DNA of 64,000 bases from Auanema rhodensis (taxonomy: Eukaryota; Animalia; Nematoda): assembly GCA_964057225.1 (NCBI GenBank), contig OZ059899.1:13020001-13084000 (forward strand). Direction: 5' to 3'. Positions 7,254 through 17,129 of this stretch are shown one piece after another. Each line of letters starts with the position of its first letter. Within the stretch, counting starts at the first letter, position 1. The notes below the pieces were generated by a model, which saw only the letters and a program-made list of their open reading frames with translations, ran no database searches and was not told the origin of the DNA. The position numbers were made by a program, and so were the translations under genes.

Positions 7254-8436
7254 ATGGCTGATTGTCCTAAAGTTCTTGAATATCCTCCAAAATGGTATGC
7301 ATCAGCACATTATTTGATTGGAATTATAATTATTCCTGTTTCATCTTATACTTATTTTGTTATAAATAAGATAACTATATCACATGTAGATAAACTATAT
7401 ACGAAATACTTGAATTTTCATCATTTGTGGGTTACAGCAGGCTCCCTTCATAATACTCTGTCTGTACGTTGTTGACGTACTGTCGACCGTATGAACTGAA
7501 GGCTTTTTCAGATAACTGTCAGCTATATGCCGGCTACACTAGCTATATCATTAGGATTTTTATCAATTAATCCACTTTGGGATATAATTATTGATGCTAC
7601 ATTTCAAGTTTTCATAACTGTTCTGGGATCTGTGCTAGCACTTCATCGCATGCTTCTCTATCTGTATGGCAAGCATGTGCCAAAATATACTCATCTGATT
7701 GCTGCATGCTATTCCTTTATATGTGGTGTTACCTATCCATCATATTTGATATTTTTTGGAATAATATATGATAAAGAAGAATCATATGACTTATTGAGAA
7801 AGGTTATAATATCATATAGTTTATACTATATAATCTAACTAATATTATCTAAGATATGTCCTGAGTTTATTCCTTTAACTGAGAAGTATTTTGTAATGTT
7901 TAGTATATCATATCATATACAAAGCATAAATAATGTATTGATATTAACATGTGTAATCACAGGAGCTGCTTCAACTATTTTTTTATATTACTCCTATACT
8001 TATTTGATGAACAATTCCTTGAATATTAGTAAAAAAACAAAGCAATTACAGTTTAGATTACTGCTGAGTATTACACTACAGGTTCGAATGATTTAATTAA
8101 GCTTCAACCAAAGCTTTTTCTTCTTTAAGCTTGCTGTTCCAGCTACGCTTCAAACCTTGCCTGGTCTATACTTTGCGGTTATTGTCACCAACAACACTGC
8201 GGTACCATTAGGTAATAGAACAGTTTCTAACAATAATAATCAAATTTGCCTCAGGGGCATCGTTACTAACATGGTCATTTGGTTCTTTTGATGCAATTTT
8301 TAATAGTTTTATATTACTTTATCTTAATCCATCATACAAAGCACGAGCTAAAATTGATTTGAATTCCCTATTATTCTGCTCAAAACAACCTCCACGTGCT
8401 GTAGTCATATCAAGAAGAATGCCTTCGAAATATTAA
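7254..8436 (+). CDS. Nematode serpentine chemoreceptor (Str superfamily, Srh/Sri-like)
   Basis: Five exons with hydrophobic TM segments, the family-type motif ISKKTKQLQFRLLLSITLQ before TM6 and ILLYLNPSYK after TM7. Stop TAA at 8434-8436. Confidence 0.8.
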
Positions 8437-8902: not shown

Positions 8903-9475
8903 TCGGATAATCGAAAAATAGTTGATAATCAACATAATTATTGATTTTGAACTTTTTCGATTTTGTGTCGAATCGACTTGAGTAATCATTTGCAAGTATA
9001 GTAGATACATATGTATTATACTTGCAAACGATTATCGAGATGAGTCCTATACCGATCAAGTAGCTTGCCTGTTTAACATCTTCTATTCATTTAAATTAAT
9101 TATGGGAAACAAGTACGACACGTATTTTAAATATATTCGCCCTCAATATGATGAGAAAGGCTTCTTCCAATGTAGAAAATGTTTAGTTCTAGAAGCATGT
9201 TGCTAAGCTGAATCTTTCAAATTTTTTTGAAAGCACACCCAAGTGTTCCTAGGATGAAGTCAATATGCTGTTTGCCAAATTCATATCTTCTGCTGTACCA
9301 AAATAAATTTTGTTTTAAATTCAAGGAAGAGCACAGTAAAATCATTTTTTTTATTATTATATCTTAATCAGAGAAAATTTTAGATTTGTACAAAAGGCAG
9401 GAAAATAAAAATGTTTTGAGAAGAATTTGAAGTATCCTAGTATCCAATCCTGGCTACCTATTGATACTCATAGAA

Positions 9476-11950
9476 TCAATAATAAATTGAGCATTCTGTT
9501 GCATCAAGACGATATAGTTTCTAGAAAAGATGTTATAAATATTAGAAAAAAGATTATAATTAGCATAGTTAACTAAGCAACTAGGTAAGTTACCTTTGTA
9601 TATGTGCCAGTAGGTTCATTAACTGATAAGGCAATAGGCCTAAAGCGACTTTCACGACAAACTTTATCTTTTCGAAATAAAAATCGTCTATAACATAATT
9701 TGTGGTTAAATAAATAAAAAAACTATTATTTATAACCTAACCTTGTCATTCCTCCATGTTGTAATAGCATAGCATTCTGTTCACTCATGAAAGGAAATGT
9801 ATGAACTTCATGTAAAGCCTAAATAAAACCAAAGTTATATACATACATATATCTATAGATAACTATATACATATAGTATATGTATATAATAGATTTGATA
9901 TAACTTACATGGCCAACACAACGATAGAAAGTAACTTCTTTAACTTTATTTGATGGTCCAAACAATATTTTTGAACTGAATGGCCATAAACAACATGGCT
10001 GATCTCTATAAATATAAATTATCAATATTATAATTCATAAATGAAACATACAATCCTTTTTTTGGATCACAAATATGTGAATATGTTGGTCTTCGTTTCA
10101 ATTCCTCTGTATGTATTTGAATTGTTGACTAAAATATTAGATTAACTATATGTATAGATAGATAGATGGATAGATAGATGTAACAGAGCTGCTTCGATCT
10201 TATAATTCCATCGGAAAATTTTTGATTCTCCAACCAAAAAAAAAAATTAAAATTTACAATTTCAGTATATAATATTATAAATACTGATTGTTTTTTTAAA
10301 AATACAACAATAGAATTTGATCGGATATCGTTCCCGATACGAAATCCAAAAATCGGATCTCTCCGTGAATTTTTTTGATCTGAGAAGCAGCTCTGTCATA
10401 ACTATACAGTATAATAGGAAATACAAAATGAAAAAGTGATGAAGGAAAATCAATTTTTGGAAGAAAATTAGAAATTTTCTTTAATTTACAAGAGGAAAAT
10501 GTATATTAAAAAATGTTTTTTAATCGATTTGTATTAATAAAAATTTGAATAAAATATGCAGAAAATGGGATTTTTTCAATTTATATTTCCTATATTGTAG
10601 GAAGATAGATGTATATACTCTAACTATCTATACTAACTATATGTATAGTATAAATACTTGAATATTAACCATATTGATCTAATAAATGAATTAAAATGAA
10701 AAACATACTTTCATATTTCTTGGAAGTAAATAAGCATTGTTCCAATGTCCATCAAGAATTAAAGCAATTTCACGTATTGTCATATATTCATCTAATTTAT
10801 TTTTCTAAACTATATGTTTAGCGTATATGGTATCTCCTATCTATAATTTATATTTTATAATTAATATATGAGATATTAACCTGATTAAATACAAAATGTT
10901 TATCATCAGTTTGTAGATCAGATTGATATACTGTTAATGGCATCAGAATCAGTTGTGTTTCTCCTATATAAATACTTTTATTATATGATGTTAGTTAAAG
11001 ATAAAAACCTTCATAACATATAAATACTCGAAATTCTTTACGATGATTTGGACGTGGACTCTCACGAAACCAACTACGAGGAACAGCTAAGCTCACACTG
11101 TAATGCACGTAGGTATAGGCTCAAGTTTGGAGAACTTCGGGGAAGGGGGTGCATGCGCTGAAGGATGTGCAGCTTAAACAGCATAAACTGAATCTGAACC
11201 CGGTATTCCGATGTTTCATCAACTGCACCGGGTCAAAAGGTCAGGACATAGATATTGAAGAGCATATTTTGGAGTTTTGGTGGTTACTTTGATACATGAA
11301 GGGCATATTCTAGTCCAGTATGCAGTACTATCCGACGGAATTCGATTAGGTCCCGTTTGTTTTACACACACATACATCCATACTCATGTTGTATCTATGC
11401 TTTATATAAATTAAAATATAAAATATTACTTGACAATTCGACCATTTAAAGGTACTGTAGGTCTGTAGATAATTCCATCTCGTGTTGGCATCTGAATATC
11501 ACGTAGTTGACGATCTGCTAAAGCTCCGCAAAAGCGTGAAACATTCATGGCACGTTGTCGAACTTGAAAGTTAAAAGTTTGAGAATATAATATGGAATAT
11601 TTGGGATTATATAAACCTCCAACTAAGTAGACAGTATCAGTTATATGATTTATTCCACGTTCAAATTGATCATCAATTTGTGAAGCTGATAAGGCTTCTC
11701 GTTCAACTTCTTCAATATCACGACGTACTGATGACACAACTCCATCAAGTACATGATTTTTATTATTTCGAATTAAAGAAACTAAAGAAGAAATTATCAA
11801 ACCTATCCTAGTTAAGTAAAACTAACCAGGCGGAGGAGGAATAACTTTGCTGAATAATCGAACAACTCCAAAAAGTTGTTCAAAAGCTGATAAAGTTGGA
11901 AGATCTATATGAAAGAAGAGAACGAGAAAAACAAATCCACGAAGTTTCAT
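9476..11950 (-). CDS. Divergent TGF-beta family ligand (DAF-7-like), 377 aa: signal peptide, prodomain, KRR site, 116-aa mature domain with only 6 Cys
   Basis: Ten exons (11950-11827, 11781-11430, 11097-11009, 10963-10881, 10804-10709, 10128-10052, 10005-9909, 9818-9742, 9687-9594, 9520-9476), all GT-AG and phase-consistent. N-terminus is MKLRGFVFLVLFF. Mature part reads PTYSHICDPKKGLDQPCCLWPF...FYRCVGHALHEVHTF...DKVCRESRFRPIAL...LDATECSIYY*. Confidence 0.75.
10183..10396. mobile_element. MITE-like insertion in intron 5 of the TGF-beta gene
   Basis: Perfect 13-bp inverted repeat ACAGAGCTGCTTC ... GAAGCAGCTCTGT, extending imperfectly inward (GATC). Confidence 0.65.
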
Positions 11951-12578
11951 TTACCTGATGATGAAAAAAATCTTTTTTTTTCTCAAAATTACAAAAGAAT
12001 TATTCTGAAAAATGATTATAAGGTTTGTGTGGCCATCTGAAAAACAAGGTCACTTCTTAATATTGAAAATGAAGAGAAAGAGAGAGGAGGGGGTTAGAAA
12101 GAGGAAGAACAAACAGGGAGACAAATGTTACAGAAATAAAGTGAAAGAGAAAGAGAGAGAGAGAGAGAGAAGAATATTTTTGAGGGAAAAAACTAAAAAT
12201 TGATCAAATGTATTGTATATAGATTATGAATAAGATTTAATCATTAAGATGAATATAAATAATAGAATGAATGAATTAGAAAAAGAGAAATCAAAAACAT
12301 TTTAAAGACAAAGATGATGACTGAGGAATATAAGATTTAGATTTATAATGATAATCTAGTTAGAAATGAAGAAAAATGTAATAATTTGAAGACATTGTGA
12401 TACTTTCATAGATGCCGTTCATTGATACTCCGTGTTTAATGGTTAAATCTGAAAAGTTTTTGGGATTCTTTGATATCATATCGTATGATCAACATCATCA
12501 TCGATTTCTTGTTTCATCACTTGTAGCCTTTCCATGGTATTACTTGGTTTTAAATGAAATGAGGGGAAACATAGAACT

Positions 12579-12665
<87 letters not shown>

Positions 12666-13313
12666 AACATGTAGGCGTTTAATATGTGAATGCTTTATTG
12701 GCTTTTGCTAATGGATCATCATGATCATCATGATCGTCTTCATGTGTTTTTACAATAAAAAACTAAGATAAATCATATTTTATTAATGGGAATTAATAAA
12801 TAATCAATAAATAATATTATATTTCTTTAAAATTTAACGAAGAAAAAAAAATTTGAAATAAGATAAAAGTATAAGATAATACATACATAATATAACAATA
12901 TATAATAAGAAATATATATTTTATAAAAAATATTGAAAATAATATTTAAAAAATCAAAAAATGTACGTTTCCATTGGTAAAAATTAGACAGAAGTTAGAA
13001 TCTCTATCTCTTATCCGTTGGATTATAAGATTTTTAAATGAATTTAAGGTAATTCTAGTACTTACTTTCAATATTAGCAGATCAATTTCAGAATTAAAAA
13101 TGGAAGATCCACAGAAAAGAAGAAGTTCTTATCGTGAATTAGCAATTTAACAAATCTTTATTTAATATTTTATTTTATTAATTTGTAAAAAAAAAACAAA
13201 AAATAATTAAATTTCATATATTTTTAATAAAAATATTCAAATATTTTTTTAAATAATAAAAAAAATAAAAAAAAATCATAATCCAATTAACAGAAATAAT
13301 TTTTAAAGAATTT

Positions 13314-15415
13314 TTATGTATATTTCATTAACTGAAGTCGTTGTGTTGTTCGCAATGTTGGAGTTGTTTTCAATCGACTAGTACCATTTGTTCGTAACTA
13401 AATTATATTAATAATAATAATAATAATAATAATTTTAATTTTAATAATAAAATATTAAAATAATTCCATTTAATCCATCTTCACTCATTTCTTATTCGCT
13501 GCTTTGCCTTGTTTCATAAGAACTAAGCGAAGTCTTAGCTTTAGTGCTTGATTCTATATCGATCAAATTTCTTGATTTGACACGAAACCAGCTTAAGAAT
13601 CAGCGAACAAAGTATTTGAACTGTAGAATGAGCTCAAAGTTGAAAAAATTTTGATTCAAGCTTGAATCTAAGTTTTAAGAATTTGCTTAAGCTGAAGCTG
13701 AAGCTTTAATACAAAATAAGGTCATATACAATGCAAATGAAGACACAAACCTTGTCATTCTGAGGCATAGATAGACGTGCTATATCCAAATGTATAGTTA
13801 AAGTATGTGGCAGTAGAAGAGGACATGTAAGTAATTCTTAAAATATTTGAATAATTAAAATAATTAAATTAATAATATTATTACCTTTAACGGTTGGTCT
13901 TTTATTTTCATTTAAATTTAAAAGACTATCAACAAGTTGTATAACTTCACTTTCATCATGTCTTTTAATTTCTGCATATTTTCCCTATAAATTAAGTTTT
14001 TTTTTTTGCAATATGAATACATAAATGAATATCAGAGGTGGATGAACTTCAAATTTTCACTATTTCTCCGGAACTCACTACTCAGATTTGGGACCGGAAT
14101 AGACGGAAGATGATTGGCATTCAAAATATCTAACAAAGCTTTTCAGATTTTCATTAAAAATTTACTTAATTTTGCTAAAATCAGGTATATTTACCGGATT
14201 CTGTCCCTTATTTTCACTTAAATCAGATAATTGTTATGTGAGCGAGAAGGCTTTTATTTTCAAAATTCATAGATCCATTACCCGGACGTTGGGTCCGGGA
14301 TCGGCTCGGAAATTTCTAGGTTCGTGATTTGTATATATATTTTTATATTTGTATACAATATATATTAATATTAATAATATATAAAGATTACTAACTTTTG
14401 TAATTTTCATTACAATTGATGGCAAATTTTCGCCATCAAATGCTCGTTTCAGCTCTAATAGTTCATATAATATACATCCTAATGACCATACATCAGTTTT
14501 CTGATTATATACACGACCTAAATATATCATATAGTTAGTTAATATAATATTTTATATGTATAAGTATATACCTTCACAGATTTCTGGACTCAAATAGTTG
14601 GGTGTTCCTATGACTGTAGCAGCAACACTACGGGTATTTAGCTCTTTTGAGATTCCAAAATCAGATAACTATAACATATAATAATTAAATAAACAAGTAA
14701 ACAAGTAAACAACATAAATAATCAATAAATTATATTGAATATACCTTACCATACATATAGTTCTTCTCTTATTCATTAAAATATTTTGAGGTTTCAAATC
14801 TCTGTGTACAATATTCTTACTATGCATATGATCTAAAGCTATAGCAATCTGAAGTATAATCAAGTTTAAGTATATTCAAGTTCAAAACTTTGATTCCAAC
14901 TTGAGTAAAGTAATTAAGAGCTTGATTGAGGGGAATCTGATTATCTTTCTGATCCGCAATCAATTTTTCCATTGTATCACCTTCAGCATATTTCATAACT
15001 GAAAAGGAAAAGTTTTAAAGTTGGAGAAAATGGCTAAATAAGCCAACCTATAGCTAAAACCTTTTCATCAGCTAAGATGAATGAATCATAATATCCAATA
15101 ATCATAGGATGTTTAAGCTTTTCAAGTAATTTTACTTCACCTTTAATTAATCTAATATAATTAATCAAAAGAATAAAATAATTAGATAAACATTACTCAT
15201 AATTTTCTGTTCATCATCAGGACCCAATTGAATTGTTTTAATTAAAACCTATAATATAAAATATTTATTAATTTATATTTAAATATATATTAATAATTAT
15301 TATTAATATTTTATAATAAAACCTTTTTTCCTTTTGGCTCATCAAGTCGCTCACATAGCCAACATACACCAAAAGCTCCACGACCTACGACGCGGATTTT
15401 TTTAAACTTATCCAT
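13314..15415 (-). CDS. nekl-2: NIMA-related kinase (NEK8-like)
   Basis: [55 protein letters not shown] and [17 protein letters not shown] closely match C. elegans NEKL-2 as I recall it. The last exon ends ...LQLMKYT*. Confidence 0.9.
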
Positions 15416-16126
15416 GTTGAAATAAAAGAAAATGGAATTTAATCCAGCTTAAATCTGAAAGAAAACATTTTATTATTCAATATAATAATTAAGAAATAAA
15501 TGATTATAATCATATAATTAAGAAATAAATGATAATATTTCACATATAATTATGTAAACTTATTAATATTTGGAAGACAATAGAAGGTTTATCTGTGAAG
15601 TTTGAGAAAAAAGTTGGAAAAGCTGTATAATGAATGAAACTAATTTTTCCTTCAGAAAACATTGATTATCGATTTGATGATGTGTTTAAAGATTGAATTG
15701 AAAAGCGGAACATGGACACAGGTACATGAATACATGTATGAAGATCGAAAGCATAAATTGAGCTTTTTATAAAATATAATAAGAGAAAAAACATAAAAAT
15801 ATTAATTATATGATTAAATTATTTTTATTTTTTATTTATAATTAATGGAAAAAACTTATTTTTATGTATTTGTCTTTCATAAATCTTTTTAAAAGAAATA
15901 GAAGACAATGATATTGATAAAGACGAGAAAGAGATAGAGAGAGAGATAGAGAGAGACGATAATGATAATGATGATACAGCCATTAGAGGATGTTGAAGAT
16001 GACTGAATATCATCGTCACGATTGTCATCGTCGTTTCAGGAAACTTGTTTTCGTCTATATCGTTGTCGTAATCGTCTCCATCAGCATTTTCATCTTAGTC
16101 GTCCATCTTCTCACTACTCACCCTCT

Positions 16127-16167
<41 letters not shown>

Positions 16168-17129
16168 GCTCATTCTCTCTCTTTATAGTATTACTACTAG
16201 TCTCTTATATAATTTGAGCATTATTTTTGGTTTTCTTTTTTGTTTCATTTACGATGTCTTCTGAATCGTCACAGAACTACATTGAATTAAATTATAAAAA
16301 GCGGTGTGACATACCTTGCAGGTGAAATTTCCAAAAATTTTCGAAAACAATTAAGTTTAGGTTGAACAACGCAGAAAAATACAGCATTTTCATAGTATTC
16401 ACATACAATACCCCGAGTATGTACCGACCTCTAAATTTCCGGATCTGTTCGAATCCGGTGTTAAACTTTGGGATGCAGAGCCAGTTGTTCTAAAAGAAAA
16501 CCTGGTTTGTTCTGGACAGGACCGAGAAAAGAACTGAATAACTTAGAAGAAATATTCGTAATATTTACGGAAATGGTACGAATTTTCCAATTATATCCGA
16601 ATTATAAGCTGATGATGCTGCTATTCTACCTCTTCCACTTCTCTATATATAGCATAAATATAATTAAAGAATAAATACATATATTAATAAATCAAAAAAT
16701 ATATTAAATATTGTATTAATATGTTATCTTTTTTTTCATTTTAAATAAGAAAAATCTAAAATAGATTAAAGCTGATTGTACAAGTTCAATATAGTATAAT
16801 GAGATGATGATGATGATGATGATGTAATAATTTACTGTTAGCGTACTTTCTGTTTATATGATTATATTATTCTTATAAGTAAAGAATAATATTAAATTGT
16901 GTTTGGTCGTAATAGTGCATATCCATATTCAATAAACCTTGATTGCTAAGAAAAATCTTGTCTAGTTCAACAGTACATTTCACATAAAAGTTTCTGCACA
17001 TGTTGTATATAACTGAAATAAGTATAATAATAATCACATGTTAAAGATACAATAATAAGAAATGAAATTTAAAAAAAAACAGCAACCGTTCTCAATTCAT
17101 TTTTTTTTTCAAAAAGTGCATTGAAAATG

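Follow-up and report, generated by a model that had tools for sequence, protein, structure and literature searches.

The locus and its transcripts

The window analysed here is a stretch of 64,000 nucleotides (nt) from the nematode Auanema rhodensis (assembly GCA_964057225.1, contig OZ059899.1, positions 13,020,001 to 13,084,000), and its element of interest is a minus-strand gene encoding a protein of 359 amino acids (aa) with a cysteine-containing C-terminal domain. We conclude that this is a real gene under selection, and that its product is probably a secreted protein derived from the TGF-beta superfamily, which has lost one ring disulphide of the cystine knot together with the cysteine that links the two chains of the dimer. 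Coordinates refer to the window and are collected in Table 1.

Spliced transcript contigs from four RNA runs of one organism define the gene as one messenger RNA (mRNA) of ~1.35 kb with 11 exons. Full-length spliced contigs of 1286-1352 nt were present in three runs, X1-X3, and partial contigs in the fourth, X4, with zero mismatches over the region 9100-12600. All ten junctions have GT..AG ends on the minus strand. An in-frame stop lies immediately upstream of the ATG, and the frame through the spliced transcripts is intact, as the initial annotation, made from the genomic letters, had said; that annotation counted ten exons where the RNA contigs show 11. The four junctions inside the C-terminal domain and the one preceding it (10128/10709) were seen in three to four RNA runs with zero mismatches. 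Among them are 9909/9818 and 9594/9520, which the initial annotation had proposed and marked for checking by RNA sequencing, and which the RNA contigs confirm.

Cysteine residues of the C-terminal domain

Numbered from the residue after the sequence ...ELKRR, the C-terminal (mature) domain has cysteine residues at positions 7, 17, 18, 42, 81 and 112. The disulphide bonds of TGF-beta1 are 7-16, 15-78, 44-109 and 48-111, and C77 makes the inter-chain bond. The same scheme is followed by TIG-2 and TIG-3 (PMC11210861). For comparison with the family we used a GDF8/11 reference set of five PF00019 fragments, fetched with a 61-aa human myostatin C-terminal bait. In two MAFFT alignments with these fragments, the six cysteines map to C7, C15, C16, C44, C78 and C109 of TGF-beta1. 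C7, the CC doublet and C42 align with their GDF8/11 counterparts, C42 falling on the first cysteine of CxGxC with the glycine at +2. C81 corresponds to the second cysteine of the CC pair; the Pro that follows it at +7 and the Ile at +8 also occur in GDF8/11. C112 takes the place of the first cysteine of CxC, and the sequence LLQH is aligned with LVHQ of the wrist helix.

The missing residues in these alignments are C48, its partner C111 and the inter-chain C77 (TGF-beta1 numbering), the same three that had been named from the genomic sequence. The motif readings given there are exact: CxGxC appears as CVGHA, CC as VC and the terminal CxC as CSI, the C-terminus reading C-S-I-Y-Y-stop (9493-9476). 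The GW..W finger motif is likewise absent, FGPSNKV standing where GDF8/11 carries FGWDWII; both tryptophan residues of finger 1 are gone, and the finger is three residues shorter than in GDF8/11.

Four of the six knot cysteines (C15, C44, C48, C78, C109, C111) are thus present. Position 77 is Val both here and in the congener described below; exceptions are known for this cysteine, so its absence is not strictly defining. Since the full set of six knot cysteines is lacking, we do not class the protein among the canonical family members and treat it as a knot-less derivative. Judged from the sequence, a domain without these three residues cannot form the characteristic knot or the covalent dimer link. 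By simple arithmetic, one disulphide pair plus the unpaired cysteine represents 4 of the 84 ways of losing three of nine cysteines, and it is the pattern predicted by selection against free thiols. In an alternative mapping, C42 would correspond to C48 and C112 to C111, and one ring bridge would again be lost; this mapping appears less likely because the glycine sits at +2 from C42.

A relative in Auanema melissensis

To find relatives we used the open frame 11779-11430 (exons 2 and 3 with the in-frame intron between them) as a query for HMMER against 1.84 billion cluster representatives. One true relative was recovered, an unnamed protein of 360 aa from Auanema sp. JU1783 (P0001, E 2e-30). 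JU1783 is a strain of A. melissensis (PMC9984802). The four remaining matches (P0002-P0005) were set aside, since they are coiled-coil, repeat or biased-composition proteins of unrelated origin. A metagenome scan gave no match, and no paralogue was found within the 64-kb window.

Identity to the A. melissensis orthologue is 67% over the prodomain and 71% over the mature part. All eight cysteine residues of the A. rhodensis protein (six in the mature part, two in the prodomain) are at the same places, and the three lost positions read A/I, V/V and I/V in A. rhodensis/A. melissensis. The A. melissensis locus (L001) is likewise divided into 11 exons by introns at identical positions, the exon lengths being equal or differing by multiples of three. 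A Nei-Gojobori comparison of the two species gave a nonsynonymous divergence (dN) of 0.24, or 0.19 in the mature domain, and a proportion of synonymous differences (pS) of 0.70, which is saturated. Given this saturation, omega (dN/dS) is at most about 0.12.

The gene is expressed, it is conserved between two deeply diverged congeners, and purifying selection acts on both halves of its protein. Taken together, these observations exclude decay and mis-splicing. The initial annotation had argued for selection rather than decay, and the outcomes it had named as speaking against its reading included no expression with dN/dS near 1, and exons that restore CxGxC or CxC. We found expression, an omega of ~0.12 or lower and the same missing cysteines in a second species, and no such exons in the contigs, from which rare isoforms can escape. 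The explanation that the unusual cysteine pattern is an annotation or splicing artefact, or belongs to a decaying pseudogene, with other exons or isoforms restoring the two motifs, is therefore largely refuted and has only a very slight chance of being correct. A minor alternative form is conceivable, since contigs drop rare isoforms, and A. melissensis does have a second predicted isoform with a different C-terminus (P0006, 364 aa, L001 10001-11752). Against this explanation, the same full-length spliced mRNA occurs in three independent samples, the junctions of the orthologue are identical, and P0006 itself restores no cysteine. P0006 reads past exon 10, has its last 15 residues replaced and loses the final cysteine too; it is probably an intron-retention prediction.

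Layout of the precursor

The protein begins with a putative signal peptide (Table 1), and the N-terminal helix is the sole confident part of the AlphaFold2 model of the orthologue. The prodomain contains an amphipathic segment, FEQLFGVVRLF, followed by PPPP, and two N-x-S sequons that are conserved in the orthologue. At the dibasic site the orthologue reads K-K-R-Pro. There is no Arg at P4 of the K-R-R sequence and hence no RXXR furin site, and the Pro at P1' is conserved. K-R-R fits the general (K/R)-Xn-(K/R) rule that has been applied to TIG-3 (PMC11210861). The first mature cysteine follows the dibasic site by six residues, and the protein ends four residues after the last one.

Table 1. 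Features of the gene in the 64,000-nt window; residue numbers above 116 and those marked aa refer to the precursor, other cysteine, Ala, Val and Ile numbers to the mature domain
Feature	Position	Strand	Basis
Whole transcript	9373..12119	-	spliced RNA contigs
Coding region	9476..11950	-	ATG at 11950, TGA at 9478-9476, 359 aa
Exon 1	12119-11827 (coding 11950-11827)	-	RNA contigs
Exon 2	11781-11617	-	RNA contigs
Exon 3	11562-11430	-	RNA contigs
Exon 4	11097-11009	-	RNA contigs
Exon 5	10963-10881	-	RNA contigs
Exon 6	10804-10709	-	RNA contigs
Exon 7	10128-10052	-	RNA contigs
Exon 8	10005-9909	-	RNA contigs
Exon 9	9818-9742	-	RNA contigs
Exon 10	9687-9594	-	RNA contigs
Exon 11	9520-9373 (coding 9520-9476)	-	RNA contigs
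Putative signal peptide, aa 1-22 (MKLR + hydrophobic core + ...LSA)	11885..11950	-	sequence reading; putative cleavage point
Prodomain part, aa 23-240, intron-interrupted	10099..11884	-	translation, orthologue comparison
Prodomain C108 (aa), conserved in orthologue	11530-11528	-	translation
Prodomain C168 (aa), conserved in orthologue	11018-11016	-	translation
Dibasic K-R-R, aa 241-243, then Pro	10090..10098	-	translation; predicted cleavage
C-terminal cysteine domain, 116 aa, aa 244-359, four introns inside	9479..10089	-	transcripts, translation
Cys 7, equivalent to TGF-beta1 C7, predicted partner C18	10069..10071	-	translation, MAFFT
Cys 17 + Cys 18, CC doublet (CCLWPF)	9990..9995	-	translation, MAFFT
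C-V-G: Cys 42 + knot glycine, first half of CxGxC	9912..9920	-	translation; Gly +2 kept in orthologue
Ala 46 at lost second CxGxC Cys; first codon past 9909/9818 junction	9816..9818	-	transcripts; orthologue Ile
Val 80 (lost inter-chain Cys) + Cys 81 (retained second Cys of CC)	9657..9662	-	translation, MAFFT
C-S-I: Cys 112 + Ile 114 at lost last Cys	9485..9493	-	translation; orthologue C-S-V

Relationship to the TGF-beta superfamily

The initial annotation called the product a TGF-beta ligand. The architecture, the cysteine spacing and protein-language-model neighbours lend this indirect support; Pfam, PDB and hhalign searches, shuffling and AlphaFold2 modelling do not. We take the supporting results first. 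The pre-pro architecture of TGF-beta ligands (signal peptide, prodomain, basic site, tail) is present in the A. rhodensis protein and likewise in its orthologue. Of 5,000,000 random placements of six cysteines in 116 residues, 65 fell within generously set TGF-beta spacing windows (~1.3e-5).

Language-model neighbours were taken from the ESM Atlas as the best 100 for each query, scores below 0.9 being rated as leads by the calibration of the tool. In this and the other database searches, P0001 stood in for the spliced protein of A. rhodensis. With the whole protein, 98 of the best 100 neighbours belong to the TGF-beta family, headed by a nematode PF00019 cluster with a score of 0.89 and 182 of 256 shared features. 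The mature part alone gave 97 PF00019 neighbours among its best 100 (top score 0.90, 179 shared features). For the prodomain of the orthologue alone the count was again 97 of 100 for the TGF-beta family, led by clusters that contain only PF00688, at a lead-level score of 0.85 with 150 shared features. Chance would hardly lead two halves of one sequence, each queried by itself, to the two domains of a single superfamily in the correct order.

A number of results weigh against membership. Searches of Pfam, PF00019 and PF00688 included, returned no family at E<=10 for P0001 or for its C-terminal part (P0001:240-360), and the exon pieces in the window gave no Pfam match. A phmmer search of all PDB sequences produced nothing relevant, only one spurious match with E ~1. 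The probability reported by hhalign against the five GDF8/11 fragments was 0.1%, from a set too narrow for a useful profile. Local alignments with GDF8/11 scored no better than those of a shuffled query (z -1.1 to +1.1). AlphaFold2 gave a predicted local distance difference test (pLDDT) score of 35 for the whole orthologue alone, which is unusable, and of 36 for its mature part supplied with GDF8/11 alignment rows. The latter model has a hairpin-helix-hairpin secondary structure that is unreliable and conditioned on the alignment with GDF8/11. Foldseek found no significant match to it (best E 0.5, template modelling score 0.2); the top rows include neurturin, TGF-beta2, activin, sclerostin and gremlin, are non-significant and carry no weight. 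Word-indexed searches with the orthologue, whole or mature part, found only the orthologue itself. The calibration of the language-model scores refers to whole proteins and not to parts, and the neighbours may partly lean on the signal peptide, the basic site and the cysteine pattern. The lack of a P4 Arg and the Pro at P1' make cleavage at K-R-R uncertain. Finally, the six remaining cysteines can pair as 7-18, 17-81 and 42-112, a map drawn by homology only.

These results bear on a second explanation, that the gene encodes an unrelated, lineage-specific secreted cysteine protein whose TGF-beta-like spacing is coincidental or convergent. In its favour are the lack of homology by hidden Markov model, PDB, hhalign or pairwise comparison, the lack of a confident fold and the single relative among 1.84 billion representatives. 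Language-model scores near 0.9, moreover, can be attained by 4-10% of shuffled proteins. Coincidence would have to account at the same time for a cysteine spacing with a chance probability of ~1e-5 and for two halves that separately match two Pfam families of one superfamily in the correct order. The finer details also fit the family: the C-x-G sequence, the Pro at +7 after a knot cysteine, the LLQH helix motif and the end of the chain four residues past the last cysteine. We therefore regard an unrelated protein as improbable. Descent from the TGF-beta superfamily, to judge from the sequence, is highly probable, though not proven. The designation DAF-7-like, also part of the initial annotation, would hold only as a label for the nine-cysteine class, from the C...CC pattern.

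Introns, unused open frames and neighbouring sequence

Intron 2 (11563-11616, minus strand) is 54 nt long, in frame and free of stops, and it is spliced out in all RNA contigs. Being in frame and stop-free, it lets 11821-11429 read as a single open reading frame (ORF) of 131 aa; we rejected this unsplit frame as an exon, given that the RNA contigs remove the 54-nt intron from it. The A. melissensis counterpart (L001 10349-10396) has 48 nt and is also in frame, and the peptides encoded by the two introns are unrelated. The idea that intron 2 is a coding 'exitron' was dropped for the same reason, the peptide not being conserved between the two species.

Intron 3 (11098-11429) is 332 nt long and has a GC content of 40% amid 30%; the A. 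melissensis intron at this place has 44 nt. One RNA run contains a separate 229-nt contig wholly within intron 3 (11194-11422, depth 3.2), which may derive from unspliced pre-mRNA or from an unrelated small transcript. Intron 3 has no match in Rfam and no second copy in the window, and Rfam gave no match elsewhere in or around the gene. Intron 6 (10129-10708) measures 580 nt, compared with 45 nt in A. melissensis, and holds an exon-like open stretch at ~10397-10286. We considered this stretch as a candidate exon and rejected it, as it is unused by the RNA contigs. In run X4, one contig links 10407-10427 to 12579-12600 via 168 foreign letters; it is probably a repeat or a chimera.

With 32% GC, the window is AT-rich. 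Upstream of the gene, on the minus strand at ~13840-15450, lies a multi-exon protein kinase gene with Pkinase matches on two exon pieces; its first exon resembles the start of a NEK-type kinase. Downstream, on the plus strand at 7254-8100, there are hydrophobic ORFs without a Pfam match. Long (GA/TC)n tracts at 12540-12710 and ~15830-16200, which read as LSLSLS or ERERER, flank the gene region. Outside the gene, the tblastx matches between L001 and the window are few, scattered and low-scoring. The gene neighbourhood therefore lends no support, and nothing in it bears on function.

Discussion

The explanation that best fits the evidence, to which we assign a probability of about 70%, is a functional, fast-evolving gene for a secreted pre-pro-protein, most likely descended from the nine-cysteine TGF-beta/activin/GDF8/DAF-7 type. 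The signal peptide would direct the protein into the endoplasmic reticulum and on to secretion, and a prodomain of ~220 aa would chaperone the 116-aa C-terminal domain. The FEQLFGVVRLF segment and the PPPP that follows it resemble the alpha1 helix and the latency lasso of pro-TGF-beta1. Cleavage by a proprotein convertase may take place at K-R-R, where the orthologue has K-K-R, or one residue earlier, or not at all. By homology, the C-terminal domain would keep the intrachain bonds C7-C18, C17-C81 and C42-C112. With the C48-C111 bridge gone, the eight-membered ring would be open and no disulphide could be threaded through it. The product would be non-covalent, either a monomer or a homo- or heterodimer, and the surface that meets receptor and prodomain would be remodelled.

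What such a protein does is a matter for speculation. The finger-1 tryptophans normally lie at the interface with the type I receptor and the prodomain. Their loss from this interface favours a non-canonical role over that of a standard covalent agonist, and this is our best guess. The protein may modulate signalling by pairing or competing with canonical ligands, on the model of Lefty, inhibin-alpha, TIG-2/TIG-3 or UNC-129, or it may be the ligand of another receptor.

An unlikely alternative is that the protein still activates receptors in the ordinary way, as a non-covalent dimer that signals through type I/II receptors and Smads; it could then be, for example, the daf-7 or tig-3 orthologue of Auanema. 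In favour of this view, the C...CC pattern at the N-terminal end belongs to the TGF-beta/activin/GDF8 class, a nematode TGF_beta cluster heads the language-model neighbours, and purifying selection on the mature part is strong. Non-covalent dimers that lack the inter-chain cysteine are active elsewhere (PMC11210861). It is difficult to reconcile with this view that the defining ring disulphide is lost, that both finger-1 tryptophans are gone from a finger three residues shorter than in GDF8/11, and that the divergence defeats Pfam, a degree of change seldom to be expected in one-to-one orthologues of the five C. elegans ligands.

Within the derived, knot-less reading that we prefer, a more specific and distinctly doubtful proposal can be made: a naturally unknotted TGF-beta member, able to fold and function with a single ring bridge, would be maintained in the trioecious genus Auanema as a non-covalent protein that modulates neuroendocrine signalling of the DAF-7 type, and could feed into the dauer decision. 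In Auanema the dauer decision also sets hermaphrodite versus female fate (PMC11796466). Because dauer entry fixes the sexual morph, a new signal of the dauer class would be of interest; its link to the present gene is speculation.

All ligands of the TGF-beta family are regarded as sharing the cystine knot as an unvarying core, and laboratory mutation of knot cysteines in activin and TGF-beta1 blocks secretion. If our interpretation is correct, loss of the knot need not abolish the TGF-beta fold or some useful derivative of it, and the Auanema protein would offer structural biologists a natural minimal scaffold. Fast-evolving nematode ligands can evidently evade Pfam, so domain-based ligand counts may be too low.

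Comparison with known systems

The closest comparison is with the nine-cysteine ligands (TGF-beta1-3, activin/inhibin-beta, GDF8/11 and DAF-7). The Auanema protein is organised as they are: the signal peptide is followed by ~220 aa of prodomain, by a basic site shortly before the first cysteine, and by a C-terminal domain of ~110 aa that stops soon after the last cysteine. It shares C7, C15, C16, C44, C78 and C109, the Gly at +2 after C44 and the Pro at +7 after C78. Unlike them, it has no C48, C111 or C77 and hence no closed ring, knot or covalent dimer; GPSNK replaces GW.W in a finger three residues shorter, the basic site is not RXXR, and PF00019 and PF00688 are unmatched.

UNC-129 of C. 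elegans offers an analogy, in mode of action, for the way in which a divergent member of the family can work. UNC-129 is assigned a TGF-beta domain by Pfam, and it keeps the knot. This TGF-beta member has no known type I/II receptor and acts non-canonically (PMC9733428).

Loss of a knot disulphide as a pair has a parallel in another family, chordate IL-17, where the likeness consists in the paired loss of one of three knot disulphides. In IL-17 the lost disulphide is the threading one, whereas in the Auanema protein it is a ring bridge. Two Ser residues take the place of the lost pair in chordate IL-17, which is still functional (PMC4517768). For ligands of the TGF-beta family, we found no report of a paired knot-disulphide loss in the literature searched, the coverage of which was incomplete.

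Ligands without the inter-chain cysteine (GDF9, BMP15, GDF3, Lefty, TIG-2 and TIG-3) resemble the Auanema protein in that the dimerisation cysteine is replaced, which implies non-covalent assembly or heterodimer exchange. This residue is missing in TIG-2, TIG-3, GDF9, BMP15 and GDF3; the replacement is Lys in TIG-2/3 and Ser in GDF9/BMP15 (PMC11210861), compared with Val in the Auanema protein. TIG-2 has the knot pairs 15-81, 44-113 and 48-115 (PMC11210861), and all six of these ligands keep the six knot cysteines, whereas the Auanema protein keeps four. Loss of the inter-chain cysteine is thus already known elsewhere.

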